Of a DNA stretch of 64,000 nucleotides, positions 33,357 to 56,800 are shown in pieces (within the stretch, counting starts at the first letter, position 1; every line of letters starts with the position of its first letter). Source of the stretch: Tubulanus polymorphus (taxonomy: Eukaryota > Animalia > Nemertea); the NCBI RefSeq assembly GCF_964204645.1, contig NC_134029.1, positions 434,001-498,000 on the forward strand. The letters are read 5' to 3'. A model generated the notes under the pieces. That model ran no database searches. It had not been told where the DNA came from and saw only the letters and a program-made list of their open reading frames with translations. The translations under genes and the position numbers were made by a program.

Positions 33357-34795
33357 TTCTAAACATTGACATCATGCAATACCGAGTAGTGTAGTGTCTT
33401 ATAGTCAAATTATGCAAACTTTATGTAAAACCCATGTTTTCATATATTTGCATACTGCGATGCGTCGTGTATTTTACTTGGCTTGGAATCAACTTTGTAT
33501 GAATCATCATTTTTGCACAAATTGATAAACAACTGGATTTGAAGGATATATGTTTGTCGAATATTTCTTCTTCAAAATGAATATTATTTCCTCGCATCAG
33601 AAACATTGGATCCCTCAGTTCCCCACTCAGTTTCTCTGCTATGTCGTCTATATATCGATTGTACTGGGTTTCTCCGCTGTGAAGGATTTCAAGTTGATGA
33701 TTTTAAATCCAGCCTCGTGAGAATGTTTTATAATACGAGCGGTTTTTAGTATTTAATGTTAGACGGATTAAGTTCACATTTAAAGTGGTATTAAATTGCC
33801 TGTTACTCATCTACCCCCAGTCATTTCTCGATTAACTCTCAACAATCTGAGTCAGTTATGTTATCAATATAATTATTATGGATTTATGATATTTATTGTG
33901 ATAGCTTAGATTCAAACCCCTCCAATTTCAACTTAGTTCTATAACCAATCTAACATCTTAAGATCAGTTTTAAGATTGAAGACCGCTTTTGAGTTTTGAC
34001 TATACATCTGGGTTCTGGTCTAACTGTGAAAAAAATCGATTCATACAAAATTTGAGACGTTTTCATAATCTGATAATTGGATGAAATTTCACAGGAATCT
34101 TCAATAATTCAAATCTTATCCTTATCTTTCCCGATGAATGCGTGTGACTGCTTGCTTCATACGTGTAACTGGATGCCTGAGTACAGTTTGTATACAGTAT
34201 GAAGTCATCGCTATGGATTTTCGAAAGAGCAAACCAGCTAGGATTGATGTTATCCGTGTAATAGTGTTACCTTAGACGAAAAACCGTCAGGGAAACACGA
34301 GATCTCCTCTCAGCCTAGAACTATTGATAAAATATCGATCCTTATAAAACATGGAATATAATATGATAGGATGGATTCAGGGGCGGGGGGGGGGTGAGTG
34401 GGGGAGTGAGGGGGGAGATTACGAGTGATCTCGGTATGAGAGATAATGGAGGGATAACAGGATCGGGGCGGGTGTACAAGTCACTAGTCACATTCCGATA
34501 ATGACAGAATTGCATCAGTTTCAACTGATGCAATTCCACAAACAGTTCACTAGATATTTTACTAGTAAAAGTTCTTTGTGTTTTCAGAAAATATAAATGT
34601 ATATATAATTCAGTTATATTTATAATTCAAGCAACAGTTCATAAATCGAAGTGAATTGTGTTAAAATTCTGAGGAATTGATTTTCACTTTGTCTTCGACA
34701 ATAAATTCAGACAATTTCACCTTACACAAATCTTAATAGATACAATAAATAAGGCTTGATTAATATCGATGTGGAAACCTGTTTATTTTGTTCAT

Positions 34796-35749
34796 ATGAT
34801 CATGAATTCTACTCAGATGCAGATTGGTCTCGCGTACAACAGTAACTTGTTACTTATGTCTATAGTGAATAAGTCTGGAATCTACCGTTCTGTATCTATG
34901 GTCATTCTGATCATTTTGTTCCTGTTAGGAGCCTTCGGAAATTCAGCTACTTTCCTGATAATGATAAGTCGCAGATTCCGCATTTTATCTTACGCTTACT
35001 ATCTGATCGTTTTATCAGTCAGTGATCTCACGTTTTGTATCAATTATACACTGATGCCTGTTTTACAGTTTGTTCTCTTGCATCTAAACATCGGTCCAAC
35101 ATTCATGATGAATTCACTGATCAATTGTCAAATCTACGAATTGGTGACAGGTTGTATGGGAGCCAATAGTTCGTGGTTAATAGTAGCGATATCTCTAGAA
35201 CGTGCGGCAGTTGTTCTCTTCCCGTTCACATCTCGTTTGATATGTACACCCAGATTTGCCCGCTGCACCATTGCGATTATTTTTGTAATAAATGCATTTG
35301 TAATTGGTGTTTATGCAGCAGTGATTATGAAGTTTTCTAAAAGTATCGGATGTTACTATGAGATATTTGATCAATTCATGCTTTTTGCCATATATGTTGG
35401 CCACGTTTATTTTCTACCTTTATCCCTGATAATTACATCAAATTCTGTTATAATAGTCCAGTTATTCAAAGGTTCAAAAATAGTTTCGTCCGATCAGAAA
35501 ACTACAAAATCAAAACGTACAACAATAATGCTTGTGACAGTTTCACTCGCATTTGCAATATTTACAGTTCCATCCTCTATTTCTGTATTATTACCAATCT
35601 CACCAAAACAGAAAGAATTTTTCTATGAAATATTCTATCAGTTCCAGGTTTCTAACTATGTGGTAAATTTCTACATATATCTTTTACTAGGACGAGAAAT
35701 TCGAGAATATTTTTACATGAAAATCCACTGTAGAAATTCAGAGAAATAA
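34796..35749 (+). CDS. Rhodopsin-family 7TM GPCR, chemoreceptor-like (FMRFamide-receptor/GPR139-like lineage-expanded type), copy 1
   Basis: Intronless ORF of 317 aa from the Met shared with the paralogs. Seven hydrophobic segments, with GN in TM1, LS-SD in TM2, TM3 Cys, SLERA (DRY variant) and NFYIY (NPxxY variant). AATAAA at 35771. Confidence 0.9.
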   Translation: MIMNSTQMQIGLAYNSNLLLMSIVNKSGIYRSVSMVILIILFLLGAFGNSATFLIMISRRFRILSYAYYLIVLSVSDLTFCINYTLMPVLQFVLLHLNIGPTFMMNSLINCQIYELVTGCMGANSSWLIVAISLERAAVVLFPFTSRLICTPRFARCTIAIIFVINAFVIGVYAAVIMKFSKSIGCYYEIFDQFMLFAIYVGHVYFLPLSLIITSNSVIIVQLFKGSKIVSSDQKTTKSKRTTIMLVTVSLAFAIFTVPSSISVLLPISPKQKEFFYEIFYQFQVSNYVVNFYIYLLLGREIREYFYMKIHCRNSEK

Positions 35750-36577
35750 ACTTTAATTGTATCAGTTACAAATAAACGATGAAAACTATAGACATTTTGT
35801 GTGTAGTACATTTATTGTAAAGATTGATCCTCACGAATTGTTGTATGTTTACAGTTAGTGAGTCGTTTAATGTGGTTACCAAAAATAAATAACTTACTAA
35901 ATGAAATACAATGTTTACTATAACATAACCTTGATATTGTCAAATTTCTCACCAAGAACTTCAATAATTCTAATCTTATCCTCATCGTTCCCGATAGACT
36001 TTGGGAATTGGATCGAGGGATTACGAGTGATCTCGGTATCGAAGGGATAATGGAAGGAAGGGCAACAGGATCGGGGCGGGAGATATTAACTCTACGCCAT
36101 CTCCTCAACTTTAAAGCATCATCCTTGACGTGACGTCACAAAGCGCGTCATAATGACCGTCAAGTACAAGTGGCTAGCTGAAGTTCATAGTTACATTCGC
36201 CGGCCAATCTGATGTGTATGTGAACTGTTCATGTTTGACGTCCTGTGAATAAGGCCTATAGTCCCCGACCGTCAGACAATCCACGTTCAGTTCAGTGGAC
36301 ATTTTACGAGTAAAAGTTATTTTTGTTTTCAGAAAATATAAATGTATACATAATTGAGTTACATCTATATCTTACACATTACACATTAAACAAATCGGAG
36401 TGAATTGTGTTAAATTTCTGAGGAATTGATTTTCATTTTGTCTTCAACAATAAATTATAAGTTCAGACAATTTCATCTCTAACAAATGTTGAATAGATAC
36501 AATAAATAAGACTTGATTAATATTGATGACGATATATTTTCAAATTCAATTCCAAACAGGAGAGCTGCTGTTTTCAT

Positions 36578-37531
36578 ATGATCATGAATTCTACTCAGAT
36601 GCAGATTGATCCTTCTTACAACAGTTACTTATTACTCATGTCCGTCGAGAGCAAGTCTGGAATCTACCGTTCTGTATCTATGGTCATTCTGATCATCTTC
36701 TTTCTCCTAGGAGCCTTTGGAAATTCAGCTACTTTCCTGATAATGATAAGTCGCAGATTCCGCAGTTTATCTTACGCTAACTATCTGATCGTTTTATCTC
36801 TCAGTGACTTTGTGTTTTGTATCAGTTTTACACTGATGCCTGTTTTACAGTTTGTTCTCTTGCGTCTTAACACCGGTCCTATATTCATCATGAAGTCAGT
36901 TATCAGTTGCCAAATCTATGATTTTGTGATGTTAACTGTGGCATCTACCAGTTCGTGGTTAATAGTAGCGATATCTCTAGAACGTGCGGCAGTTGTTCTC
37001 TTCCCGTTCACATCTCGTTTGATATGTACACCGACATTCGCTCGAAGTGTCATTGTTATTATTTCTACTATAAATGCATCACTAATTGGTATTCCCCCAA
37101 TCGTAATGATACATTTTTCTGACCAGTTCGTGTGCTATTATGAATTATATCAACAAGTTATATTTTTCAAGCTAATTGTTGTCTACGTTTATTTTCTACC
37201 TTTATCTTTGATTATAACATCAAATACGGTTATAATAATTCAATTATTCAGAGGTTCAAAAATAGTTTCGTCCGATCAGAAAACAGCAAAATCAAAACGT
37301 ACAACAATAATGCTTGTAACAGTTTCGCTCTCATTTGCGACATTTACGCTTCCTTCATCTCTAGCTGTATTCCTTCCAATCTCAATTGAGCTGAGGGAAT
37401 TTCTCTATCAACTATTCCATCAGTTCCAAATGTGTAATTATGTGGTTAATTTTTACATATATCTTTTACTGGGACGAGAAATTCGTGAATATTTCTGTAT
37501 GAAAATCCGCTGTAGAAATTCAGTGAAATAA
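36578..37531 (+). CDS. Rhodopsin-family chemoreceptor-like GPCR, copy 2
   Basis: 317-aa intronless paralog with the same motifs, in a tandem duplication unit. Confidence 0.92.
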   Translation: MIMNSTQMQIDPSYNSYLLLMSVESKSGIYRSVSMVILIIFFLLGAFGNSATFLIMISRRFRSLSYANYLIVLSLSDFVFCISFTLMPVLQFVLLRLNTGPIFIMKSVISCQIYDFVMLTVASTSSWLIVAISLERAAVVLFPFTSRLICTPTFARSVIVIISTINASLIGIPPIVMIHFSDQFVCYYELYQQVIFFKLIVVYVYFLPLSLIITSNTVIIIQLFRGSKIVSSDQKTAKSKRTTIMLVTVSLSFATFTLPSSLAVFLPISIELREFLYQLFHQFQMCNYVVNFYIYLLLGREIREYFCMKIRCRNSVK

Positions 37532-38540
37532 ACTTCAATTGTATCAGTTACAAATAAACGATGGCAACTATAGACATTTTGTGTGTAATACATTTATTGT
37601 AAAGATTTATCTTTACAAATTGTTGTATGTTTACTGTTAGTGAGTCGTTTAATGATAAAAAATAAATAACTTACTAAATGAAATACAATGTTTACTAATA
37701 ACAAAACCTTGATATTGTCAAATTTCTCACCAAGAACTTCAATAATTCTAATCTTATCCTCATCGTTCCCGATAGACTTTGGGAATTGGATCGTGAATAC
37801 CGCCCATAAAATGTAAGATGTCGTTGGTATAGATTTTTATAGAGACCTAGGATTAATGTTATCCGTATAATAGTGTTACCTAAGACGAAAAACCGGCAGG
37901 GTAACATGAGAGATCTGCAGTGTTTCCTCTCAGCCTCGCTCTGATAACACCTTTGATGAAATATCGATCCTGATATCACATGAAACATGGAATAGAATAT
38001 GATAGGATGAATTCGGGGGGTGAGTGGGGGGAAGAGGGTGGAGGGATTACGAGTGATCTCGGTATCGAAGGGATAATGGAAGGAAGGGCAACAGGATCGG
38101 GGCGGGAGATATTAACTCTACGCCATCTCTTCACCTTTAAAGCATCATCCTTGACGTGACGTCACAAAGCGCGTCATAATGACCGTCAAGTACAAGTGGC
38201 TAGCTGAAGTTCATAGTTACATTCGCCGGCCAATCTGATGTGTATGTGAACTGTTCATGTTTGACGTCCTGTGAATAAGGCCTATAGTCCCCGACCGTCA
38301 GACAATCCACGTTCAGTTCAGTGGACATTTTACGAGTAAAAGTTATTTTTGTTTTCAGAAAATATAAATGTATACATAATTGAGTTACATCTATATCTTA
38401 CACATTACACATTAAACAAATCGGAGTGAATTGTGGTAAATTTCTGAGGAATTGATTTTCATTTTGTCTTCAGACAATTTCATCTCTTACAAATAAGACT
38501 TGATTGAAATCGGATGTGGTGAGCTGTTTATTTTGTTCAT

Positions 38541-39494
38541 ATGATCATGAATTCTACTCAGATGCAGATTGGTCCCGCGTACAACAGTTACTTATTACTC
38601 ATGTCTGTGGAGAACAGGTCTGGAATCTACCGAACTGTATCTATGGTCATTCTAGTCATCTCCTTTCTGTTAGGAGCCTTCGGAAATTTGGCTACTTTCC
38701 TGATAATGCTAAGTCGTAGATTCCGCAGTTTATCTTACGCTAACTATCTGATCGCTTTGTCTATCAGTGATTTGATGGTTTGTATCAGTTTTACACTGAT
38801 GCCTGTTTTACAGTTTGTTCTCTTGCATCTAAACATCGGTCCAATGTTCATGATAAATTCACTGATCAGTTGTCAAATCTATGAGGCTCTGACGAATTCT
38901 ATGGGTTCCAATAGTGCGTGGTTAATAGTAGCGATATCTCTAGAACGTGCGGCAGTTGTTCTCTTCCCGTTCACATCTCGTTTGATATGTACACCGACAT
39001 TCGCTCGAAGCGTCATCGTTTTTATTTTCATTATAAGTACATTGCTAATTGGTATTCCCTCAATAGTATTGATACACCTTTCTGGCCAGTTTGTGTCTTA
39101 TTGTAAAATATTTCACCAACTTAGATTTTTCACCTTTTTAGTTGCCTTCATATATTTTCTACCTTTATCGTTGGTTATTACATCAAATTCTATAATAATA
39201 ATTCAATTATTCAGAGGTTCAAAAATAGTTTCGTCCGATCAGAAAACTGCAAAATCAAAACGTACGACAATAATGCTTGTGACAGTTTCACTCGCATTTG
39301 CAACATTTACATTACCAACTTCTATCACTACATATTTACCAATCTCAATTGAACTGAAGGAATTTCTCTTTGAAATATTCTATCAGTTTCAAGTTTCTAA
39401 TTATACGGTTAATTTCTACATATATCTCTTACTAGGACGAGAAATTCGTGAATTTTTCTGTATGAAAATCCGCTGTAGAAATTCAGTGAAATAA
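38541..39494 (+). CDS. Rhodopsin-family chemoreceptor-like GPCR, copy 3
   Basis: 317-aa intronless paralog with the same motifs. Confidence 0.92.
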   Translation: MIMNSTQMQIGPAYNSYLLLMSVENRSGIYRTVSMVILVISFLLGAFGNLATFLIMLSRRFRSLSYANYLIALSISDLMVCISFTLMPVLQFVLLHLNIGPMFMINSLISCQIYEALTNSMGSNSAWLIVAISLERAAVVLFPFTSRLICTPTFARSVIVFIFIISTLLIGIPSIVLIHLSGQFVSYCKIFHQLRFFTFLVAFIYFLPLSLVITSNSIIIIQLFRGSKIVSSDQKTAKSKRTTIMLVTVSLAFATFTLPTSITTYLPISIELKEFLFEIFYQFQVSNYTVNFYIYLLLGREIREFFCMKIRCRNSVK

Positions 39495-40058: not shown

Positions 40059-42012
40059 CTGTAGAATAAGATGAACATAGTTCCCCTGTTGCGGTCACCG
40101 GCCACGAGGAACACCAGTGACCGTAACGACGCCAATCAGCAGGAAATACCAGTACCACCAGAGATCGTACGACAGTTTTTTGGGCATTTTACGAGCAGTT
40201 CATGGAGCAACAACATGACTTAAACAGTGTCATTAGTCATGATAATTGATACTTCAAGCGAGGGACCCGTTTATGCGTCGTTTGTTCAACTGACTGGATA
40301 GCAAGATACAAAATTTCGATAAAATCAAATCTTGATTTATTCATTCTCAGTTTTTAATTCAATTTCGATCAAAGTAGAAATAAAATCATTAAAATCTTGT
40401 TTGCAGTTTTCACTCGAGTCTCAATCCTTTCAACTTAAAAGTTTAATTTTCTGATTAAAGAGATCCTACATTTGACTGTGATCCTAGAATCTCCTCTCAA
40501 CCACCACGACCCTCACTATCTGTCAGACGATCAAAATGTAATCAAAGATGGCCGCTAGTCCGCCACTATCAGATCGTAATTAGGACCAAAGCGATAATCA
40601 AATTTACTCTTGTCTTGTTCTCATCGCTACGTGCGTCTAATCAGAAATCTGGAGATATGTTTTCCATTAGCAATATCGCCGAGCATACCGCGGTAAGTGA
40701 GGTTATTCCGCCGGTTAAAAATTAGTTAAAAGTAAGCCGTCATCGTACGACCTACTCGACTCTCCTCACGCAGTGGTTTCAGGCCATATTCATTAATACA
40801 ATGAGTGTCTATGTCAATATCATTAATACCGGACCAGTCAAATATCATTACTGACTCGTATCCAACCATAGATAAACCGAAACCCATCTGCATCTATCGA
40901 GTCCGTCCATATACAACATAGCACTACCTGCGGGCTGCTGCTGCTACTGCCGCCGCTTCATAGTCTGTGCAAAAATCGATGTAAGCAATCGCGCGTATGT
41001 TGTAAATGGCCCCCAAAGCGCTTACAGACAACAGGGTCGTCGGTACATTCCATTCATCAACCACCAGTAAATCAGTCACTTTCTGATTAGTTTTAACATA
41101 TTCAAACCGACAGTTGAACAGCGCTGAGGCGAACTCTGCGCTGCCGTTGCTGAAATTGATTTGCAGCCGAGCTTGAAAAACTGACACCATAAATTCTACC
41201 GAGCCCAAATCATTCCCTTTTCGAAATATACATACCCCACGTGACGCATATACAAAATCCTATTGGCTGCTGTGTACAACAATGTTAGGATATTGTGACG
41301 TTGCTAAGTGTTATACCCCCTCTACAAAACATAGACCACGTGATGTGTATAAGCAAGTCTATTGGCTGCTCGAGTGCAACAATGTACATTGTAAATCGAG
41401 AAGCTGCTAGGAGACGTGGTATCCCAGCAGCCTCTAGAGTATCCGGTTCGTATTCGAGGTATTTTAGACCGATTAGTGTGTTTATTTAGTTAGCACTTTG
41501 GTAGTTGATCTGTCAGAGCGACTGTGGTGGTGGTAGGGGCTATCAAATTAACACTGGTTGCAGTGAAGTGACATTTCTCTTACTGACACCGGATCTGATA
41601 CCGTTTTTATCCATGGTTTCAGGCAGTTGAATAGATCACCTTATACCGGAGCGTCTATTTGACACACATGGAAACTGTTATTTTACGCTATTTTACGGAA
41701 CACTGACTGTCATTTGACTGTCACGTGAGACGGATTTGTATTTCAATTTTCTTTAATGACGCCTCCATTTTCTGTCACTGCAAAGGAAATTGCTTCCAGC
41801 TAGTTTTGATCTATCTTGGTTTAGTGCGTCATTTTTTGTATAGATATTCAACAGATTTACGAGATTCAAAAAAGTCAAACTAAGCATAGATTCGAACAGG
41901 GAACGTCTTGTACGTTCTAACCCCACTTACATTGCTTCCGGTATGAAAAATTCCCTAAGTCATCGCCTCGTAACCCTTACACCAACCATAGCTTGGCTAT
42001 AACCCTAACCCT

Positions 42013-42080
42013 AGCAGGACTCGAACCTGCGACCCCAAGCATGCCAGTGGAGCGTGCTAACCACTAAACCATAGATCAGT
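42013..42080 (-). mobile_element. tRNA-derived repeat (SINE-like or pseudo-tRNA), second copy
   Basis: Minus strand TGGTTTAGTGG ... GGTTCGAGTCC; shares ctatggt..ag..gttagc and tggcatg with the 27315 copy. Confidence 0.6.
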
Positions 42081-43832
42081 AGTGACTGGTGGAATTCGTA
42101 AGTCATTCTGGTCAGATGGTTAACCATTTGTGTGGTGACTGGTGGCCAGTCAGGTGTGGTGACTAAAAATACCTCACTGTCAGTCACATATTGCGCAAGT
42201 CACTATGAATCCTATTTTACATCATAAGATTGTATTGTTTTCATAGATTGCTGCTATTGTAACGATGTATAACATACTCTGTGACACTGGGTGACATCGA
42301 TGTCTGATGTAAAGATGCAATGTTATCTTATAAGACTATCAGAGACTGCAGGAGGATTTTAGAGTCACGTCGATAAAAACATGACGGTTTTGGTTGATAA
42401 TGCCGGTTACATGAAGGACTGATATTGAAATATGAATCTATCGATATTCGATCTGTTTCAACAAATTGAATTTCATCTTTCCATATATATATATATTTCA
42501 TTATTGAAACCACACCCACTAAAAACTATCGTATATCACTATTTATCGATCAGTACAATTTCGAACATCGTCATAAGTTAAGTCTCTTTAGATATGTAAC
42601 TATCCGTCTAGTTTAGACTGAATTTGAATAACAGTCAAACTCTCGTTACAAATCATATAATCATCAATGATCAGGTCGTGTGAATCTTAAAATTGCGCTT
42701 TTCCCATTCTCAAAACGCATTTCAAATCTGTCTCTGAAGTCGTATAAACGCGCAAAGTCGCACTAGGATTGAATGTCCCTATTTCCTTGCAAATCAAAAC
42801 GACACAACCGTAAGAAACTACGTAAGCGCTTCCTTAACTCAAATACTATGAGCCATTTTGAAAAGCGATAACAATCTTTCGCTCCCCGGAGTGATGAAGG
42901 TTTATGTATTTTCGATGTTCATACTGTTGTCGAGACTGAAATTTTCATCACGAATCGATGACGATGTTAACCCGATTCCCAGCAGACGTAGAAATAATTA
43001 GATCAGGGACGGTTTTAGGGACCGCAAACATGGAATATTAGCTCGATACGTTGATGGCTGTTCGTGTCAACACGCAAGACACTATTTCAATCGTGAACTC
43101 ATACGATAAACAGTAGAAAATTGAGAAATAAAATCAATATTAGAAGTTTGTAAACTCGTCGCTATTATAGTAACACGTTTGTTTTAATAGTGATTTTTCT
43201 GCATTGTTTGCCCGCGTACAATTTACGGGTGTTGTCATTTTTTCTCCGACTGAAATATGATTAATTCTCCCTCCCGAGGGCATATTCGAATAGGATAATC
43301 ATTAATTCAGACTCCGGTGACGGGGTTGATATCGGATGACGCGGCACCCACGTGTTTGGCGTCAAACCAAATACACCACAGAAGAAATCTTTACATAAGA
43401 TACAGTACGCGTGTAATGCGATACACATGTCTCCCTCTTTGAATCAAAGCCCGCTCACGCCTCCTCACAGCGACAAAAAAAAATCAATTTTCTTCTTCCA
43501 GAATCATTTTCCCATCCGTGTTGAAATGTCATCATCAATACATAATGAACCTGGATGATATTTTAAACCAGGGATTAACTCTCGTAATAATTTTCCTCCT
43601 AGTTGTTTTTGATAATGCATTTTTCTCGTAGTTGACCTTCTCACCGCCTTCTGCTGATTCTATTTACATATAAAATGAATTTTCCAATTTCCCTCGACCG
43701 AATAAATCAATTTACTTTTTATCCCTTTCACTGTCTCTAAATCCAATCTGATAGGATCGCTAGAAACACTTTATATTTATCGACGGAGAGGGGGTTTTCT
43801 GATTTCCGCATTTGTATCTATTTTTAGACACA

Positions 43833-46800
43833 ATGACGTCACACTATTTACTGTTTGCCGCGGTAGTTCTTTCTGTGATATGTTTGTCGACACCAGTCCA
43901 ACAGGGGGCGACACTAGCCGAACAAAAGACAACAGCGACTCAACAACAGAAGGCAAGACCAGGAGAGCAGTATCCGAAACCTAATGATCAGGTGAGTCAG
44001 TGTTGTAGCTTACGTCCAAATCTACGTCATCGATTGGAGGACTCCCTGACCTGAACTACCTTGTCGGGTAAGGAAATCCCTGACCGGAAGTACTTTATCG
44101 ATGATGCTATGATCGAATAACGTCAACAGGGCTCTTTGACCAGACTACGTCATCGAATTGGGGACTCTCAGACGTGAACTACGTCATCGAGTTGGGGACT
44201 CATTGACCAGACCACGTCATCGAGTTGGGGACTCTGTGACCAGACCACGTCATCGAATTGGGGACTCTATGACCAGACCACGTCATAGAATTGGGGACTC
44301 TTTGACCAGACCACGTCATCGAATTGTGGACTCTTTGACCAGACCACGTCATCGAATTGGTGACTCTCAGACGTGAACTACGTCATCGAGTTGGGGACTC
44401 ATCGACCAGACCACGTCATCGAGTTGGGGACTCTGTGACCAGACCACGTCATCGAATTGGGGACTCTATGACCAGACCACGTCATAGAATTGGGGACTCT
44501 CTGGCGTGAACTACGTCATCGAGTTGGGGACTCATTGACCAGACCACGTCATCGAATTGGGGACTCTCTGGCGTGAACCACGTCATCGAGTTGGGGACTC
44601 ATTGACCAGACCACGTCATCGAATTGGGGACTCTCTGGCGTGAACTACGTCATCGAGTTGGGGACTCCCTCAACTGACTACGTTTATGCATTACATAATA
44701 CAGAGATACACTACAATATAACCACACAGTGCATATTAGTGCAAATTGATTGAGATACCGCGTATCATAAACTCCCTCTCCAGTTTCTCTCGCTTCCCTC
44801 TTCACTTTTAGCGAATCACTATTTTTGATATGATTATATATAGAATGATATATCATATGATATTGAGAGCGAGATGAGAGTCAGTCATTGATTATTGATA
44901 TTCGTATAATATCAGGAGGGTTGTTTATAAGAATCCTATCTGTACGTGGACTGCACCGTTACCCGGAGACACCTAATGACATTTTCAGGACTACAGATTG
45001 AATGTTGTTATTGTTGATGTATCGGGACACTTTTTGCCTGTGGTCATCTTTCCGATAGTAAATCTAATTGTCAACCCGACCCGACCGGGCTGCGCATCTC
45101 ATATCACAAATACTTATACCTCTCAGAAAATAGCTTCATACAGAGCGATCACAGTTTATTAGGTTTATACGTCCGACCTTGTGGTCAGAGCGGAGCAGGT
45201 CTCATTTACAATTCATATCATATTTGACGACTCTAGACGCCGCAATTTGTTCCACGGAGAGCGACAATACATCGGTTACAACATTCTGATATTAAAATCC
45301 ATAAAAAGAAAATGAAAGAGAAATGTCTCCTCGAGTTATTCGACATACTAATTGTCATCTCCAGGACTGTTGCGACGTAATTATGAGAAATATAGTTCAG
45401 ATCTGGATTTTATCCATAATACATAATTCGATGAGTATAAGAATATAGTCGGACCATAGAATAGATGTATCTTGGAATTGCATCAGTCAGTCTACTGTTT
45501 ACACTGATCCTGTTTCGAGTCGTTTAAATATTGAATAGCTTTAAACACACTTCAAACTTCGACTCATAAATAAATTTTATGTTCTAATTCACAGTTGAAT
45601 CGGTTCGTTTTTTAAAAGCCATTAAAGCCATCGTGAATAGAATATAAGCTGGATTTATCTGTCGCGTTGATTATTGATTTATTTTTACGAGTGTAGAGCC
45701 TCATTAACCGGAGAACAGTCATTAAAACCTATCAGCCTCGTTTAAGCCTATTAGACACGTGACACACGTCGCCGCCATGTTTATTTAAATTAGCTACTTC
45801 CGCTTTAGAATCAACTCAATAACGGATGAGATCGTGAACAAGATTAACGTTCAGTGAAAAGAAACGCGAAGCGAATTCAATTAGTGCTGGTGGTGATTTC
45901 CTGAACCTATCAGTTCCGCAGAGTTAGTTGTAAAAGAATTTCACTCGATGTCATTGGAAGTGAACTGATTTAAAACCGTGAACCTCTTGGAATCCGGAAA
46001 ATAACTTTTAGAATTTATTCAGTAAGTAAGGAGTCTTCGATCAAAATTAGAATTCTCGCTCGATTTATTTTGATAAAAGTGGCTTGTCACATAAGGCTCG
46101 GTCCTAGGCTTTATTTGTACAGTCATGTTTCAAGTATAAGAAACGCCTTAAATCTTTAATATCTATCTTAATCAGAGTTTGATAGGATATCGGAGAAATA
46201 TCCACCTCGCTCGTCTGGTAAGCGAGGATGGGTTTAGAAGATGAGTTTAGATTGTGGTATCAGACAAACAGTGGCCGCGTGTAACTGACCTCACCTCTAT
46301 TCAGCAGCAGCGGTATCGCTACTACATTGTGGATTAGCCTTAAAAAAGCTAACATTTGTAGGATCATAGATTTTGAAGTTTTGATTTCAACAGGTAAAAT
46401 ACAAAAGACACTAGAGGCCATTGGCCAAATTCCAAAATGTTGTTCTGATTGAAATGAAGATTGAGATAAATATATGCTGAGGTGATAATGAAACGTATGA
46501 TGAAACATCGAATTCATCGATGGCGTTTAAGGATAATGTGTAGAAACTGCGACCCGGAAACTGCTTGTATAAGCGAGGAGCGAGTGAAGAATGTTATACC
46601 GGTGGGTTATTTGTGAGAATATCCCCAGCTGTGTTTTATACGATATGCACCGATAATAATAAAATACATGTATCTCTGAATCCCGTGAGATCGACATCGG
46701 GTTGATGAGAAATCCAGATACACGGATATATTGAAATACGAAGCATTCGTTCAATGGACCGTATATAGAAAAACGTGTGCAGAAAACCAAACATACATAA

Positions 46801-49800
46801 CTCCCGGTAACTGTGTGGTACGTAAAATAGTTGTGGCTCGGGGCACAGGTTGCATAGTCATCTTACAACTTAAGACCAGTCCGATAGATTTAAGCCTGAT
46901 TTTGGACTTGAATCACAACTGTGCGACTAGGCTCATTCATAGCTGAGACTTAAGACCAGCATTATGGTTTTAGACAACTTTCGCAAGTCTCGACGTGAAC
47001 CGGGCCCTGGTGCTATTTGCAACTGCAAAATGATCGTTTTTAGATTTGTGAATTCCGATTTTATTCCAGCTATCGACTAAAGGTTAGGGTTCACGCGTCT
47101 GATTTTGTTATAGATTTTCTTCAACTTAATTCTTTGATTAATTTACTCAATTGAATAAACCCAAGGTGTATTCACAACTCGTATAGCAGCTGTTCGTGAA
47201 GTTTCACGCTTTCCGGGCCTCATTCTGTTCAGTTACAGTAGATACACTGCAATTTTTATATGTAGTAAAATTGAAGCCTCGAGGGTAGAATTGAATGAAT
47301 ATGTTTGAAACGGAAGAATTTTCCACTAGCGATAAATTCACTGTCACCAGTCAATTTATCGCTCGCCATATACTACACAAGAAACGCATCTCAATATAGA
47401 ACTAGTTTCCCGGTGACATTTTACAGATGAAATACATTTCTGGATGTAAATTCAGTAACTGGTGATGTTTGTAAGAAACAGTTCCTGTGGCTCGGTTGAA
47501 GGCACTTCTCGCAATTATGACAAAAGGCTCTAATAGACTAGTCTGACGTTTCGAGTCAATTCTATGAACTATTTTCAGGGAATAAGTCTAGTTTTTTCTG
47601 CAAATGACTCACCGAAATCATTCGAAACGTCACTGCTCTCTCAGTTTTGTTGAAGATGGCTCTTAGAATTGAATCTACATAAATGTCACTACTCTCTAAG
47701 TCTTTCTTGAGCCTTTTTAAGATTATAGACTGTCACTGTGTATGGAAACTATTCCCGGGGGTCAGTTTCAGTATGTTCAATCAGAAACGACAGAACGATC
47801 TCGGCGGATGGTCAGTCAGTATTCCTCCTCAATTCGTTCTGTCGCGCTGACAAAAATTACTGATCGATTCAAAACTGTGGAGTCTTAAAGGTCGAGACGA
47901 GAACAAGATGAGTTTCCTCGCTACTACTATCAGTGTATCAGATACAAATCTATTTAGAGTATAGAAACATGGAACCGACAGAGACGATGTCAATCTCATA
48001 TCACAATCAGATTGAAATTCTATCACAGAAGAAATGTATGCAATTAAATGAAGCTAGATCAGGAATCTTATAGAGAGTTGTTATTCCCAATCAGAAAATA
48101 TCAAGTCGTAGATATAGGTGAGATAGACAGCTAGTCTAATATAATAGGATAACCGAGAGAGGGGGAGAGATAGGTAGATAGATGATAGGATTGGAGAGAA
48201 AAATAGGATACCAAGTAATAAGATTCTGTATGCAAAAGTCTGTTTTTAATGAAATCAGAATGTCGCAGCTGTTGAAAAACCGATCAAGTGAAATGTATGG
48301 TTTCGGGTCACGCGAGAAAACAAATCATTGTTTTCTCGTAATTTTCTCGCTATCAAATTTATTTCAAATCATTTTGTTTTCTCACCCGAAATATTTGTTT
48401 TCTCGCTATCAAATTTGTTTTGAATTTTCTGGTGCACTCGTAAATCAGCCAAATAGAGATGGGTCAGGAAAGATGAACAGGTCAGGAAAGATGAACAGGT
48501 CTGGAAAGATGAACAGGTCAGGAAAGATGAACAGGTCAGGAAAGATGAACAGGTCTGGAAAGATGAACAGGTCAGGAAAGAAGAAGGGGTTAAAATGCAA
48601 TCTGATTATTACTGGTTGAGTCAAGAGGGTCCTGCGCTATGTTACAGAATTGTTCTTGTGACCGATAACTACATGTAAAACACACTGATAACGAATAACG
48701 AACGACTATTGACGGATGATTGACTACTTAGCAACACGCGATTTTCCATTTAAGACCTACAACATCGAGTTAATGACGAGATACTTAAGAGGAATTAGCC
48801 CTTGTCGCAGTTCGAGACGGCAGTGTATTGTATACCGAGAACTATTTACTGTCAGTGTTTTTATCACAGACAACAGACAGAGAGACCTAATAAATGACTG
48901 ACTTTATAGAGACCAGACAATGATCTCTTACGAGCTTCGTGACAACCCCCTCTCTAACCTGCCTCATATTTATCTATACAATAGAGAAGCTCGGTTTCAA
49001 AGCTGAATCACTGACGTTTACGCAGTGGTTGCATATTAGGTTCGAATCTGTCAGTGCATTTTATTCTATGTATCGGTATTTGAATTTTCTACAATTCCCA
49101 TCTTCCTGAATGGCTTCGGAGAAAACCCGTTATCGCTGCTTTGTAGCTATATTAGAATCTCTTTATAATTTCAGTTAGTACTAGATTTGGAAGGAATATC
49201 TCATGATGACGGTAATAATGATGATCCTAAACGAACGATGGTGATACCTAAAGAAGGCAAACAAGGCCAATATTACGTGTTCCATGATTATGATAAAGTA
49301 AGTATTGAACTATGAGGTATTCATTGTAATGTGACCTGTAATGTATAGAGGTATGAATGGGGTATGCATGTGGACTCCTGGGCCTTTTAGGTTATATATT
49401 ATATCCTCTAATTTCACTAGTTGTCCAGCGTTTCGTTTGACTTCATCTTGTATTTTTCGATTTCTAAATAAACCTACCTAATAAACTATCTGTTACGAGT
49501 TTGTCTCTAAATGTTTGCCCGAGGGGGAGGGAGGTTAGGATGGGGGTGGGTGTGGAGGGCGAATAGAATCCCGACACGCGATATTTCATTAAGATTCATT
49601 GTTTGCTGCTTCTAATTCAATTTCTACGTTCAATATTTACTGAAATGATAAATCAATGTTCGAGGCGTCGGATATTAATTAGATCTACTACATTTACAAA
49701 GACTTCAGTTTCTTACTCCTTCCGACCCGCGCCACCGACCCGCGCTACCGACCCGCGCCACCGACCCGCGCCACCGACCCGCGCTACCGACCCGCGCTAC

Positions 49801-52427
49801 CGACCCGCGCCACCGACCCGCGCTACCGACCCGCGCCACCGACCCGCGACTCTCACACTCGAGGGAGACACTTGTAAATTGGTTTTCTGAATTATGAGAG
49901 CAAAAAGACGCCGGAATTATGTAAACAATTTAAATGAAAAGCGGAGAATCGAGAGAATATTGAAATCTAATTTAATCAATCTATGAAGATTGTTTTTCTT
50001 TGAACTATGATCCGTATGATTGGTAAGATTTTACGATGTGTTGAAATTCTCTATTCAAATGATTCAATTGAATTAGAATCAGAACACTGTATGAACTCAT
50101 TCCCTTTCCTCCTTCGCTCTTTCTCTCTCCCTTTCACTCTCCTCCCCTCACTCTCCTCCCCTCACTTTCACTCTCCTCCTCACTTTCACTCTCCCCTCAC
50201 TCTCACACTCATCCACCGAATAACCAATTGATTCATACAACAAAAACCAGCATCAATAAACTACGATCGCTGGATGAAATTAATTGCGCTTTTCATCGAC
50301 TTTTCCTCGAGATCAATTATTCTATTCATTGTTATTTCACCGATAAGGCTGATAACACTCGTGCCCGGCTCGGCTTTATACGGCTGGTTTATCAGTGTCT
50401 GATCACTGCGGGAGAGAGAGAGAGAACTGTCGTTAACAGTGTACTGCCGTAAATCTTATCCCTGTGTAATAAAATACTAATAGATTCATGACTCCAATAG
50501 AATTCTTCTCGTACTGAAATTACCTTCACTTCTCCTTCTCCTCATCTTCACTCTCATTGATTCTCTTTCCCCGATCATCTCTAACATCCTCCTTTCCCGT
50601 CTGGTTTGTGTGGGTGTCGTACTGTCGTACGGACCGAGCTTATCTGACAGACAAGCGACAGAGAAGGTCAAATCCACAATCAGAAAACCGAAAGTTTTAA
50701 GGCATCGAAAAAGTTTTTTTAACCGATTTTTCGATATTGAGAACTTTTCGTTTCTTTCGAGTCTTTATTTGTGACACATTGCTAGAGGGTGACATGTGTG
50801 TCAGACATAAACTGACTAACCTCAGTAATTACCTACTGCAAACCCCTGGCATCTTGTCACCTATCTCTCCTGCACAATTAATGAATAATATCCCCAGACC
50901 GTTATCAGTAGAAAGCTTATTTAAAAATAACAGGAAGTCGATCCGATATCGCGAACCTGAGCTGACTTCCGGTTTGTGTATAATTAATATTCACGCTGGC
51001 ATTTATTCATTATCGAAGTTTCCCGTATTGCGTCTAACCCGAACCCCTTTGACATTTATATAACTTTATGTACAATCAACCTCACTGTGGCCTCACAGTG
51101 GCCTCACAGTGTGTCTGACTGTATAATATAGCGCCGATTGTTCATTTAAGATTCAGTATTCCTCCAGTTCGGTAAACATCACCTGGAATTGACTTTCTGA
51201 TTCAATTATGGAAATAATGCTTATTCGGCGAATAATCCATAATTACGACCGTATTAATATAGTATTGACTAGTTATCAATGCTTTTAATAATATCTCACC
51301 TTAAACTCTATGAATTAATAGATAGTAATTGAATTTATCTACGGACTAGAATTGGAGCTTGAATAATTCATAGCAGGGGATTCGATATCTCACCTTCTAA
51401 ACTCTATAAATCATGCAACGATAATTTTCGATATCCTTCTAGCAGTTTTCAATGAGTGCTGACAAAATAGTGATCTTACAAAAGCATTGAATACGATTGG
51501 ATCCGAGTATGATTCAAAAATGTAACTGAAAACGACCCGTTGAGAACCCCCGTTTGACTACAGTTTTAAAAATATGTCCTTTAATTCTAAATCTATAACT
51601 GAGGACTCAATTCGAACGCGTTTAGCTCTGAGAACGAAAAGATCTCATTAATCATCGCATTCTTTTTAAAAATCCGAATCATTCTTATTCCGCTGTCGTT
51701 GCAGGATTTGACAGTTTATCGCGACGCACCGAATAAAGTCTGTTACATATCACGGTTACCGAAACTAAAGAATAAACCGCAAGCGAACAAGGTAAAGTAC
51801 AAAATACTGAATTACTGAATAACTGAATTATCCTGTTATTAGTAATTGTAGTCGGTTCCTTATTGTACATAAATGAATAAATGGACGCATTCAAGCTAAA
51901 AGCTGTAATTTATAGTTTGTCCAATATTTTTGCATTTAAGCAATAATATAAAACACGGAGTCTATAGTTTATAATCAAAGGTTGCTTTCATTTACTTCTA
52001 GAGACGGGTCGATACACGCCATCTATTGTTGACGATGACAGTTAAGAACACGATCAACCCGTTGACCCGAGTTGGCGAGAAAATCGCGACGATTTGCGCC
52101 GGATATCGCGGTTTCCACGTGAAAGACACGAAAAGAGAACACCACCTAGCGGCCGAGAATGAAACTAAAGATCGTTGTCGTCGGTTCGCTCGACGCCGCA
52201 ATCGCTGGTGGTGTAAAGACTGCTGTATCATTACTGTTCATCGATTGGCTAGTTTTTCGTCGCCGGTTACGCCACCTACAACGACAACGACGGCCGGAAG
52301 TAGACAGAATAAAAAACAGCAAACCGGGAACTCGAGAAAAAAACTTAAAGATGGAGGCAGTCGTAGGAGAGGAGAGCGCAGGCGCGGCCGCAAGGATAAA
52401 AAGAGGAATCAACGCCGAAGAGACTAA
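43833..52427 (+). CDS. Secreted BRICHOS-domain precursor with a C-terminal cationic Cys-rich peptide (antimicrobial-peptide precursor candidate); 4 coding exons, 264 aa
   Basis: Exons 43833-43991 (signal peptide MTSHYLLFAAVVLSVICLSTP), 49175-49297 (..YYVFHDYDK), 51705-51791 (DLTVYRDAPNKVCYISRL..) and 52002-52427 (..RVGEKIATICAGYRGFHV-KDTKR..). All introns are phase 0 GT-AG. The HD-x-x-x-x-LT-x-Y...CYI and G-x-x-I-x-x-x-C motifs are BRICHOS hallmarks. AATAAA near 52642. Confidence 0.82.
44135..44668. repeat. 33/34-bp minisatellite, about 16 copies, in BRICHOS-gene intron 1
   Basis: Unit accagaccacgtcatcgaattggggactctgtg, with a degenerate lead-in from about 44010. Confidence 0.93.
48461..48581. 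repeat. 18-bp minisatellite, about 6.5 copies
   Basis: Unit ggtcaggaaagatgaaca. Confidence 0.93.
49722..49848. repeat. 13-bp GC-rich minisatellite, about 10 copies
   Basis: Unit ccgacccgcgc(c/t)a. Confidence 0.92.
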
Positions 52428-53835
52428 AAAACTAAAATGGTGGCGTCGAACATTAGTGACCAAAAATTACAGCGTGTTGTATATGTGAACTAGTTTTTGG
52501 AACACTCTGTATCGCGAATTGTATTGACACATCTCTTTTTTCCTGACTTGTAAATAGTAGAATCGATAAATCAGAAAATCATGATAGAAATCAATAGTTC
52601 GTCTTTAAAACAGTTTAACATTTAATATACAACCGACACAAATAAATAAAAATTCCACTCAGAAATATTTCTTCAACTCTATCTCTTTCTTCATAACTAT
52701 ATATAATCTATTCTAAACTATAGCTGCAGTGATTTGTACTGTTGTCTTATATTCCTGTTTTAGTATCCTCGACGATTGTAGATAAAGAGACCCCTGGCGG
52801 ACGAAGCTGTAACTATGATAACGGTGATTATGATGATGAAATAAAAATGTTTGTTGTGAAGGATTTTTGTCCGGTTTTGTTCTTGTTGTTTCACTGATCT
52901 GGTTAAATAGAGATTCGTATGCGGACGAAAGAAACGCACGCCGAATGAGTGACGTCATCTTCTGGAACAACTCCGACCCTATAATTTACTGATAGTCAAT
53001 ATGCACGATCGTTCCATTCTAGATACATACATTCCTCCGTCCCCGGTTGGAAAATAAAATTTCAAAATCTCCAAATATGTTCTCCAGATATGAATCTGAA
53101 TTCTGCAAATACGAACATACATACGTGACTTCTAATTTGATTCTACCCCCAGTAGGTCACGGAAAACGCCCAGAATAAGAGTCAGTGAACTATTTCAAAA
53201 TCTGTATGATTTAGAATTATATTCGAATATATTGTTTGTTCTATATAACATGTTATTATGACACTTGTCATAAATTCCACAGTCGTTTTCCAAGTACTTC
53301 ACTTTACAATATCTATGTCAACAAGAATCTGCCACCATCAAAAACGTCACAACAGTCTCAAGATGTTTTATAGGAAGTTAGGTAATTCATAACAAATATA
53401 GATATCTTATTATTGCGCTTCAAAAAACGAATTGAAAACTCAAACGGGATCCCGCGAGGTAGGATTACGAATAGACAGGGACAGGCAGGGAAAGGTTTTA
53501 TATATTGATATCAACTTTAACCTGGATGCTTCTTCAATTCATTCTAAATTGAGCCTTTCTATAAAGCCGTAAACTATTATTTCCTTCGATTAAAAATAGA
53601 TGATTCATGATTGACAATTGACAGCACAAAAAATCTACAGAAAATGGTTTAATATTAAGCGGTTGTGTTAGATGTGTAGATTTAGGTATCTTATTACAAT
53701 TCTATGACATACCGCGGGTTCTTGTATTCATTTCATTATATTCACAGTAAAGTTTGCGCAGTAACTCGAGGATAACGACGTCTTGAATCCCTCGTCCTTT
53801 CCAGCGCCACGGTGGAATTAAACAACAAGGCAGAT

Positions 53836-56800
53836 ATGGAAAAGGTTTGAGATTTTACATGATCATTATATCAGCTATCTAAATCATTTACGATGGTTTC
53901 CATAGGCGAGTGAGTGAAAAGTGGACTTTTTCTACAATCTGTCTCAGTATTATGTCGGTTTTCTTCATTTAGATTACAGAAATCACAGCCTATGGAAATC
54001 AACATGGCACCCACGAATTTCGTCTTCTTTTACAATTTTTCAGATGTAAATGTGTTTTTATTATATTTGGCAAACTTTCCGAGAATTGTGATAATCGTGT
54101 GATACGTATAAAGTATAGGTCTATCTAAATCATTAGTCTGCATGCAATCAACCGGATTTTCTGTATAGATTTGCATTGTTTGATTAGTTAAATCACATTC
54201 TCAGCTTAAAGACACTTTTATTTCGTTATCGTTATTAAGATGAGTTCAAGAAGCCGTTTTACAGTTTTGAGGCACAACTTTTTGGAAATTTGTCTCCGTT
54301 ACGTTTCCAATTTATCTTTTTGGACCACCTGGAAACTGTAAAAAGATATAAAACCTTTTTTGAGATGAAAATAAATTACTATTAAGAAGGTTTATTTCAA
54401 GTGGTTTTAGAAGTTTTTGACTCATTTCTATTTACTGAAAGCGGACAGTGTATTGTAGTATGTAGTGTATATTCACGTATTCAATGTCCCGCGGCTATTA
54501 CACATTTTATCACGATCTACACCGAATCAAATATCTATATAACTAAATGCCGATTTAATATTCATTAATCGTGAATTCTTTTCTTGCACCACTGGAAACA
54601 TTAGAAGCTCTTTCCGTAAAATTGTCCGCAAACATTTTTATAATGATTGTACTTCCTGTGAATTTCGTCCGCGAGTATTTTCAAATCAATTCTGTAATTT
54701 CTTCAAATGTTATATTCCACCAGGTGGAGTCTGGGTCGTCTGTGTCCGATAAACCGGACGGCAGTAAAAAGGAAGTAAAACGCGGGAACTGGACTGGAAA
54801 GTTGGACTTTCTTCTGTCAACGATTGGTTACGCGGTCGGTTTAGGGAATGTTTGGAGGTTTCCATTTTTAGCGTACAGAAATGGCGGCGGTGAATTCAAT
54901 GAATATTTATTAAAAAAAACATCATTTATAAAATGATGATGATGATGATAAATTAATATTGATAATATTTCTGTTTAGGTGCGTTTTTGATCCCGTACGT
55001 GATCATGTTAGCTTTTACTGGTATTCCACTGTTTTTCCTAGAACTGGCTTTGGGTCAGTTCGCATCTGAGGGTCCGATAACAGTGTGGAAATTAGCTCCA
55101 CTCTTTAAAGGTACTTCATCAATCTACATATAATCATTTCAAATTTTCACCGATTTTTGTAGTGAAGCATGATTTAGATGCAGAGATGCTGAGTCAAATT
55201 TACTTGGAAGATTTATCAATATACGTCGAATTGGTATTGTTAAATGATAGAAGCTTTTTAGTTGGAAGGGCATCGAAAAATTCACTATTCACAAATCTTA
55301 GATTAGAAATTGAATTCATTATTGAAACTTGTTTTTTCATTCTGAGTATGACAATGAATTTGTTTCTGCAGGGATAGGTTGGGCGATGGTTGTCGTAAGT
55401 GGATTAGTCGGTATTTACTACAATGTTATTATAGCTTGGACAATCTTCTATTTCGTGGCTTCGTTAACGTCTAAATTACCGTGGATGGATTGTCAGAATC
55501 CCTGGAATACACCGGCCTGTAAGGAAGCGGGAAGTATGTAGCAAAGAATAGTAATCTGAATCACTCTTCGTCTGGACCCAGATTCACAGTCGTGATGTCT
55601 GTGGTCTCAAATCTTCCTCTAAAGTTGTAGTAGAGTGGCTATATTTTTAAAACGCTGTGTAGAATTAAACCCAACCATAAAACGAATAAACTTTTTGCCC
55701 CCCTTGGGAGTAATTACTTAATGGTGGCATCTAGATACCGAAAAAAGAAATGGAGAGAGACATGGGCCCCATATGTTGTCACCACGTCGATTTCCGCTCA
55801 AATCCAACGACCTTGCCCAAACATGAACCATCACCCAGCTGCGATGGCCGAGTGGTTAAGGCGTTGGACTTGAAATCCAATGGGATCTTCCCGCGTAGGT
55901 TCGAACCCTACTCGCAGCGAATATAATATTTTGTTCCGACCTCCTTTGAGTGGACTTGATTCAAAATGTTAAATTCAATTGACGATTTTGAAAACACTAG
56001 ATATTTTTATTTCAGAGCCGTATTGTAACATAACGGCGAATATAACAGTTAACTGTACAAACGCGATCGGGTCTCAATCTCCCAGCGAGCAGTATTGGGA
56101 GTAAGTTTAAATTCTTTGTCTCTTCAGGGGTTACATTGAAACACTGTCTACAGTTTCATCAATGTTACATTGAGAATGAATTATTCTTAATTCTAGAATC
56201 AAATTTTACTAAAATTTGTGGAACTGATTCCTTAGAATTTGAATGCACTATCTTCGTCAATGTTACGTGACCGCGTTTGGGCTAAAATAGTCTCTTTCTT
56301 TAGGCGACACGTATTAGGATTAACGGATGGATTAGAGAATATGGGGATTATCCGCTGGAAACTGGCATTGTGTTTGTTAGGTGCATGGGTTGTAATATTC
56401 CTCTGCCTCATTAAAGGAGTCAAATCCTCGGGAAAGGTAAAACTTCAGACCCATTTACACAGTTAACTTCGGATTCATAAGAAAATCTTGAAATAGATCT
56501 TGAATAGATCTTGAAATTCCTAGAATAAATTGTATTTTATTCTGTAGGTTGTATATTTCACTGCTACATTTCCGTACATTGTATTGGTAATACTGTTGGT
56601 GAGAGGAGTCACTTTACCCGGCGCTAAAAAAGGAATAATGTTTTACGTGACTCCCGATTTTAACAAACTCAAAGATTCAAAGGTATCTTTCATTCCAAAA
56701 TCAAGCCAATCTTGTAAATACACTGAATTAAATTTATTCGCAAAACATCATGGATTTTTAATGGATCTCCTTGTTTATTACGTATAGGTTTGGGCTGATG

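Follow-up and report, generated by a model that had tools for sequence, protein, structure and literature searches.

To our knowledge, the BRICHOS antimicrobial peptides (AMPs) that have been tested come from annelids only, and several of them are salt-tolerant drug leads. The polychaete precursors compared in this study are those of arenicin, abarenicin, alvinellacin, capitellacin, nicomicin, polaricin, and AmBRI-44a. A review terms the BRICHOS-AMP family polychaete-only and states that its cargoes share no cross-species homology (PMC6780910). From Heteromastus filiformis, 13 peptides were mined by the combination of signal peptide, BRICHOS domain, dibasic site, and cationic Cys-rich segment, and both of those tested killed bacteria (PMC10745061). 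Outside annelids, coral BRICHOS cargoes have been predicted to be antimicrobial (PMC12960093). Our literature search found no paper on BRICHOS in nemerteans.

Here, we analyzed a gene of the nemertean Tubulanus polymorphus located in a window of 64,000 nucleotides (contig NC_134029.1, positions 434,001 to 498,000). Its product, XP_074651322.1, has in common with the polychaete precursors a signal peptide, a propiece, a BRICHOS domain with Asp and two Cys, a dibasic site, and a cationic Cys-containing cargo lacking cross-species homology. It differs from them in its nemertean host, a cationic proregion, an internal cargo followed by 60 aa, a C-x11-C-x2-CC pattern with adjacent Cys, and a furin motif inside the candidate cargo.

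Results

Gene structure and transcription

The gene consists of four coding exons, all in phase 0, that encode 264 aa (Table 1). The introns (5183, 2407, and 210 nt) each have GT..AG ends, and KRR 123–125 straddles the junction of exons 3 and 4. A public spliced contig joins 49297 to 51705 and 51791 to 52002, and the loose end that precedes exon 2 in it corresponds to the last letters of exon 1, hence the 43991/49175 junction. All three junctions of the four exons assembled in an earlier note on this DNA are thus present, and the gene is real, transcribed, and spliced. It is not "hidden", as that note had it: the RefSeq model XP_074651322.1, labelled uncharacterized, is identical to the four-exon model letter for letter, and PF04089 is precomputed on it. 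Provided that no intron interrupts its 5′ part, the length of the transcript contig places its start near 43690. We set aside an upstream start of the transmembrane type (acceptor-like AG, 43826–43827): the TATA-like box lies at the spacing expected from the contig, which favors an unspliced 5′ end without proving it.

The gene is single-copy, as paralogue searches of the Tubulanus genome returned only this locus. On contig C1, a sequence weakly resembling exon 3 (E 1.9) was judged a chance match, having no Pfam match, companion exons, or database protein, and a match on contig C3 (E 1.3) was dropped likewise. When the haplotype pair was compared, none of the 22 differences fell in exons 3–4 (4.6 expected, P 0.006), so the cargo and tail look constrained.

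Table 1 Features of the XP_074651322.1 gene (window coordinates).
Feature	Position	Strand	Remarks
TATA-like box	43669..43675	+	sole TATA match in 43500-43833
Exon 1, coding part	43833..43991	+	53 aa; signal-peptide-like N-terminus, then polar Gln/Thr-rich propiece
33-bp minisatellite	44132..44667	.	16 copies; inside intron 1
Exon 2	49175..49297	+	41 aa (aa 54-94); N-terminal BRICHOS strands, conserved Asp91 (49286-49288)
Exon 3	51705..51791	+	29 aa (aa 95-123); BRICHOS strands, first conserved Cys107, short basic loop
Exon 4	52002..52427	+	141 aa plus stop
Exon 4, first part	52002..52130	+	aa 124-166; BRICHOS end, second conserved Cys155
Dibasic KR (aa 167-168)	52131..52136	+	candidate convertase site; 4 residues past last BRICHOS strand
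Acidic spacer/linker (aa 169-180)	52137..52172	+	net -3; N-glycosylation sequon at N176
RCRR (aa 181-184)	52173..52184	+	sole R-x-[KR]-R furin motif in XP_074651322.1; includes first cargo cysteine
Cargo segment (aa 182-204)	52176..52244	+	Arg-rich first half, Trp/Cys/Ile/Val-rich second half; net +7; C-x11-C-x2-CC
Ser/Pro/Thr-rich linker (aa 205-223)	52245..52301	+	uncharged; possible O-glycosylated stalk (putative function)
Polybasic tail (aa 224-264)	52302..52424	+	21 Lys/Arg, net +17; many dibasic sites
3′ UTR	52428..52797	+	up to transcript contig end

Signal peptide, BRICHOS domain, and proregion

Hydropathy analysis indicated a signal-peptide-like N-terminus (aa 1 to ~19) with a 13-residue hydrophobic core (aa 6–18) and no second hydrophobic segment. 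PF04089 matched aa 88–158 (E 1.2e-7, 32.3 bits against a cut-off of 25), and the conserved residues D91, C107, and C155 are present. Both Cys align with those of ITM2, while the Asp and the first Cys align with proSP-C. The secreted architecture proposed earlier, with a signal peptide predicted by hydropathy, a propiece, BRICHOS, and a dibasic site, was therefore recovered. AlphaFold models from one or three input sequences reached a pLDDT of only 36–37; with these low-confidence models, the top eight Foldseek rows (E 0.048) and the top VIA row (Z 4.2) were weak matches to BRICHOS. The proregion (aa 21–168) is cationic with a net charge of +9, whereas that of annelid AMP precursors is described as anionic (PMC6265681).

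Processing sites, cargo, and tail

The KR site and the acidic spacer expected after the BRICHOS domain are both present. It had been suggested that the spacer may neutralize the cargo, but a charge of −3 cannot offset +7, nor +22 when the tail is counted; the proregion, too, is positive. The composition given for the cargo segment is correct (7 Arg, 1 Lys, 2 Trp, and 4 Cys: C182, C194, C197, and C198), with 1 Asp in addition. The cargo is not C-terminal as had been described, because the frame runs on past the Cys segment for a Thr-rich and polybasic stretch of 60 aa; the polybasic part (aa 224–264) is transcribed (public spliced contig) and nearly free of hydrophobic residues. The boundaries proposed for the 23-residue peptide were not supported either: positions P2, P4, and P6 are all non-basic at both R181|C182 and R204|L205, and the full furin motif RCRR sits within the 23-mer. 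This motif is found ~20 aa past the last BRICHOS strand, with basic residues at P1, P2, P4, and P6. The stretch R181–R191 is a cluster of convertase motifs that also holds much of the charge of the cargo, and the cargo remaining after a cut at R191 would be weakly cationic. Counted from KR, the segment aa 169–204 has a net charge of +5, and the product extending to the end would be 96 aa; the BRICHOS peptides of H. filiformis have 18–91 aa (PMC10745061).

If the proposed boundaries hold, the 23-mer (23 aa, +7, 7 Arg versus 1 Lys) is within the range of beta-hairpin AMPs, a class with 11–25 aa, a charge of +1 to +8, and Arg over Lys (PMC13001179). A single hairpin would fit only crossed Cys pairing; nested pairing puts C194 and C197 two apart and breaks the beta-hairpin AMP rule, which requires every Cys pair to be at least 3 residues apart. 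The low-confidence models place a helix on the Arg-rich half. Hydrophobic residues (VILMFWY) make up a low 26% of the cargo and do not show the strand alternation seen in arenicins. An insulin-like reading of C-x11-C was rejected: Pfam gives no match, and the other Cys spacing does not fit the insulin pattern. No Pfam family matched the cargo, and there is no amidation signal at its end.

Searches with exon 4 or the cargo returned no homologue in a set of 5.8 billion sequences, in 1.84 billion representatives (where two repeat proteins matched spuriously), or in the Atlas, and the cargo matched no solved peptide among PDB sequences. The cargo is thus, as proposed, without a known relative, and no homologue outside the genus was found in the sequence sets searched. 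Such a blank is not equivalent to absence because word seeds, length windows, and 50% clustering limit the searches. The nearest Atlas clusters by language-model features (scores 0.86–0.88) are cnidarian and molluscan BRICHOS proteins, which serve as leads only.

Comparison with other BRICHOS proteins

XP_074651322.1 is not a housekeeping ITM2 or OAF orthologue, both of which are separate genes on other contigs of the Tubulanus genome. The ITM2B-like protein XP_074657482.1 is encoded on contig C9. This protein and human ITM2B share the BRICHOS core with XP_074651322.1 at ~23–25% identity. Two phase-0 introns of ITM2 match those of the present gene in position, one following the Asp strand and the other the helix-1 region. 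Whereas ITM2 sits in the membrane as a type II protein, XP_074651322.1 has no such anchor and carries a short basic loop in place of the helix-1 sequence; the helix-1 exon encodes 37 aa in ITM2, compared with 29 aa in exon 3 here. OAF (Out at first), encoded on contig C8, is likewise a secreted or anchored BRICHOS protein with a Cys-rich mature part. Its mature part has 70 aa and four disulfides, unlike the Tubulanus cargo, and neither OAF_N nor OAF_C has a Pfam match in XP_074651322.1.

Compared by description only, HfBRI-54 of H. filiformis, in which a Thr-rich coil comes after a four-Cys segment and further processing is suspected, is a precedent for the Tubulanus layout; it differs in that its precursor is transmembrane, its Cys are spaced C-x4-C-x4-C-x4-C, and its description mentions no polybasic tail (PMC10745061). 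HfBRI-38, likened in the same way, has a helix followed by a disulfide-bonded hairpin (PMC10745061). Pocillopora CAH3125467.1 and XP_058945786.1 (PMC12960093) resemble the Tubulanus protein in combining a signal peptide, BRICHOS, a furin site, and a Cys-rich cargo. Unlike the Tubulanus cargo, that of CAH3125467.1 is terminal and hydrophobic, with other Cys spacing and no basic tail.

Discussion

We tentatively favor, at somewhat less than even confidence, a secreted BRICHOS preproprotein that supplies mucus or body fluid with a convertase-processed host-defence peptide, cationic and disulfide-bonded. The signal peptide would route the precursor into the secretory pathway, where BRICHOS may hold the second half of the cargo, which is hydrophobic and strand-prone, during formation of the two cargo disulfides. 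A proprotein convertase would cleave at KR168 and at dibasic sites of the tail to yield a product that exceeds the 23-mer in length (~aa 169 to 226 or further), and a disulfide at C182 might shield RCRR or keep the cut pieces together. The Arg/Trp-rich part would bind and damage anionic microbial membranes, and the polybasic tail, until it is trimmed, may anchor the protein to polyanionic surfaces of mucus or cells. The host-defence reading is supported by the combination of signal peptide, BRICHOS, dibasic site, and cationic Cys-rich segment, which equals the criterion used for mining H. filiformis. It is also favored by the fit of the cargo to the beta-AMP profile, its lack of cross-species homology like the other cargoes of the family, the separate ITM2 and OAF genes, and the apparent constraint on cargo and tail between haplotypes. 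It is weakened by the positive proregion, the coincidence of much of the cargo charge with the R181–R191 motif cluster, the low hydrophobic content without arenicin-like strand alternation, and the single copy, unlike the duplicated alvinellacin family.

A structural or matrix-type secreted BRICHOS protein, acting like gastrokines or chondromodulin and not as an antibiotic, is a lesser but serious possibility. In that case, processing would take place in the polybasic stretch R181–R191, the client would be the hydrophobic Cys-rich strand that follows, and glycosaminoglycans, mucus, or tube material would be bound by the basic tail together with the Thr-rich stalk. The placement of RCRR and its basic residues at P1, P2, P4, and P6 agree with this, as do the RVKR site of coral CAH3125467.1, similarly placed after a polar linker (by eye), a weak alignment of the cargo end with the last strand of ITM2 clients, the single, constrained gene, and the scarcity of hydrophobic residues in the tail. 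Bri23, a hairpin client of BRICHOS, has no antimicrobial activity (PMC6780910). However, a cut at R184 or R191 would separate one Cys from the three that the product retains, except where disulfides hold the chains together, and no homologue was found beyond the genus in the sets searched, whereas matrix proteins are conserved.

The protein might instead belong to a defensive or predatory secretion of epidermal or proboscis glands that acts on animal cells, either cytolytically or by aiding membrane passage of toxins; we regard this as improbable. In favor of such a role, membrane-active peptides typically contain Arg/Trp-rich and polybasic stretches. Lineage-restricted Cys-rich peptides occur in nemertean mucus and proboscis (PMC12846013), and the BRICHOS peptide nicomicin is cytotoxic and haemolytic (PMC6265681). 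Against this, no paper combining BRICHOS and nemerteans was found, the titles and abstracts from a venom literature search revealed no BRICHOS toxin, the cargo matches no solved peptide, and the gene is single-copy. A signalling precursor, whose convertase products would include a peptide ligand, possibly two-chain and disulfide-linked, and whose basic tail would be an extension for retention, appears slightly less probable still. The many convertase sites and the even Cys number across RCRR would suit it, and some growth factors carry a basic C-terminal extension, but the cargo has neither an amidation signal nor a Pfam family match, and we know of no BRICHOS-borne hormone.

A more specific version of the host-defence reading, which we consider rather unlikely as a whole, is that the cargo is the first nemertean defence peptide delivered by BRICHOS, built on a new helix-plus-strand scaffold with two disulfides, and that the Thr-rich stalk and polybasic tail tether it to mucus until convertase cleavage. 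Because candidates from corals were proposed before and every worm species examined has supplied cargo patterns of its own, the surprise would be limited. With its cationic prodomain, basic tail, and lack of helix 1, the protein would test how BRICHOS grips a highly charged client. If active, the nemertean peptide would bring a new scaffold and a second phylum into the BRICHOS-AMP system; if it is indeed the first nemertean defence peptide of this kind, the system is not confined to annelids.

Gene structure and transcription

The four exons that an earlier note had assembled from the sequence proved sound: all are open, in phase 0 and joined across introns with GT..AG ends, together encoding 264 aa (53 + 41 + 29 + 141). 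A 1308-nt contig from the public run X2, with no letter differences from the window and a 3' end at 52797, skips both 49298–51704 and the third intron (210 nt). At its loose end ahead of exon 2 the contig carries the end of exon 1, and all three proposed junctions are therefore supported as transcribed, on the evidence of one run of unrecorded tissue. The gene had been called hidden; a protein search with exon 4 instead returned, at 100% identity, the 264-aa record XP_074651322.1 ("uncharacterized protein LOC141906060") of the palaeonemertean ribbon worm Tubulanus polymorphus, so it is already annotated, though not described. This stored record (P0001) was the query in whole-protein searches.

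Features of the BRICHOS gene and its product
Feature	Position	Strand	Details
Exon 1 (coding)	43833–43991	+	phase 0, open, 53 aa
Exon 2	49175–49297	+	phase 0, open, 41 aa
Exon 3	51705–51791	+	phase 0, open, 29 aa
Exon 4	52002–52427	+	phase 0, open, 141 aa
Minisatellite, 33 bp	44132–44667		intron 1
Minisatellite, 18 bp	48462–48585		intron 1
Minisatellite, 13 bp	49722–49848		intron 2
Cys-rich segment	aa 182–204 (52176–52244)		C-x11-C-x2-CC
Ser/Pro/Thr linker	aa 205–223		uncharged, after Cys-rich segment
Tail	aa 224–264		21 Lys/Arg, net +17

Genomic context

The gene is single-copy in protein, profile and DNA searches, the genome search scoring few candidates. ITM2B-like and OAF genes lie apart from it, on contigs C9 and C8 of the same genome; it is not a housekeeping orthologue. 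The ITM2B-like protein (P0004, XP_074657482.1; L002:720–899) has Ala at residue 143 in place of the conserved BRICHOS Asp, a site occupied only by Asp, Asn, Glu or Ser among approximately 1900 single BRICHOS domains surveyed (PMC9627735); no Cys occurs in its client region, which is preceded by a His-rich linker. An open stretch resembling exon 3 (L011:362–523, G000:C1:1388362–1388523, minus strand; ~35% identity, E 1.9 genome-wide) has neither a Pfam match nor companion exons, and is a chance similarity or a relic.

None of the gene's neighbors in the window is related to it; they are GPCRs, an EF-hand gene, an SLC6 transporter and a carboxylesterase. The GPCRs include three tandem, intronless, mutually similar rhodopsin-type genes (34769–39494; 317–326 aa), the first matching 7tm_1 and Srw, and a tRNA-Ser(TGA) was called at 55838–55919 within the SLC6 region. 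A short, very high-copy repeat at 48990–49153 (contig depths there sum to tens of thousands, vs ~28 nearby), for which no terminal repeats were found, adjoins the exon 2 acceptor. Two of the three intronic minisatellites sit in spurious ORFs. At 41995–42075, telomere-like TAACCC units adjoin a minus-strand, tRNA-like sequence in which ARAGORN called no tRNA and which is probably a SINE head.

The BRICHOS domain and its conservation

The proposed BRICHOS domain was confirmed in the whole protein by PF04089 (E 1.2e-7, 32.3 bits, cut-off 25); exon 3 by itself gave E 0.053. The conserved Asp and two Cys that define the family (PMC10182729) are present as Asp91, Cys107 and Cys155. Two phase-0 introns occupy positions equivalent to those of the own-genome ITM2 gene; exon 3 encodes 29 aa vs 37, and in place of the ITM2 helix 1 stretch there is a shorter basic loop (aa 114–127, net +5, KRR at 123–125). 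Structure prediction was poor (pLDDT 36 and 37) because an alignment was lacking. The best fold matches of these models were weak and all BRICHOS, as were the Atlas neighbors, mainly cnidarian and molluscan. By sequence, P0001 is placed in the BRICHOS superfamily.

A DNA contig from another sample shows 22 differences over 2459 bases, none of which falls in the coding sequence of exons 3–4 (513 bases; 4.6 expected, P 0.006; P 0.25 if only synonymous sites are assumed free). The pattern is consistent with purifying selection acting on the coding part overall rather than with rapid diversification; the alvinellacin exon is likewise monomorphic (PMC5431198). Run X5, from another study under the same species label, contains a diverged transcript matching 50 nt of exon 2 (49247–49296), and its next ten codons, read by eye, differ at five silent sites with residues unchanged. 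Two species go under the name T. polymorphus (PMC8468679), so this transcript is probably a sister-species orthologue. This comparison indicates conservation of the BRICHOS core within the genus; X5 gave no exon 4 alignment at 88% identity.

The cysteine-rich segment and tail

Residue counts reported earlier for the Cys-rich segment were correct on recount, and the segment has no relative in the sequence collections, Atlas, Pfam or PDB sequences searched. It had been taken as C-terminal, but the reading frame continues for 60 aa through the linker and tail. Its proposed boundaries were not upheld: neither R181 nor R204 has a basic residue at P2, P4 or P6, so that by general convertase rules and those of PMC6265681 they are not cleavage sites, whereas R184, inside the segment, has one at each position. 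The acidic spacer (aa 169–180), suggested as a neutralizer, carries −3, insufficient to balance the segment. Unlike the alternating strands of arenicin, the segment falls into two halves, with large hydrophobic residues forming 9% of the Arg-rich one and 40% of the Trp/Cys/Ile/Val-rich one. Nested Cys pairing would leave C194–C197 two residues apart, outside the spacing rule for β-hairpin AMPs (PMC13001179). In both low-confidence models the Arg-rich half is helical, and one of them has a strand at 200–206; these are hints only.

Discussion

In layout P0001 resembles the polychaete BRICHOS-AMP precursors, yet it lacks their terminal cargo and anionic proregion, the latter being typical of described annelid precursors and net +9 here. 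With these two features missing and the defining antimicrobial activity putative, we do not place P0001 in that family. Our literature search found no paper combining BRICHOS and nemertean, and reviews list annelid members only. Strong novelty is argued against by 13 such peptides in nine families from one polychaete transcriptome, by published coral candidates (PMC12960093) and by the common secreted invertebrate BRICHOS clusters in Atlas.

Building on the expression, splicing, domain and composition observed directly, we propose that the BRICHOS precursor would be secreted, that BRICHOS may shield a hydrophobic strand during folding, and that convertases would cut at KR168 and within the tail to release a cationic, disulfide-bonded product. 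We tentatively read this product as a host-defence peptide, with slightly less than even confidence, because the same architecture has been a productive guide to AMPs in polychaetes (PMC10745061, PMC9410094) and HfBRI-54, with a four-Cys segment and a Thr-rich extension, offers a precedent for the layout. P0001 may possibly, though doubtfully, be a matrix or mucus protein, its Arg cluster (with further convertase motifs at R187, R189 and R191) being mainly a processing site. Membership in a toxic secretion is unlikely, and a signaling role slightly more so.
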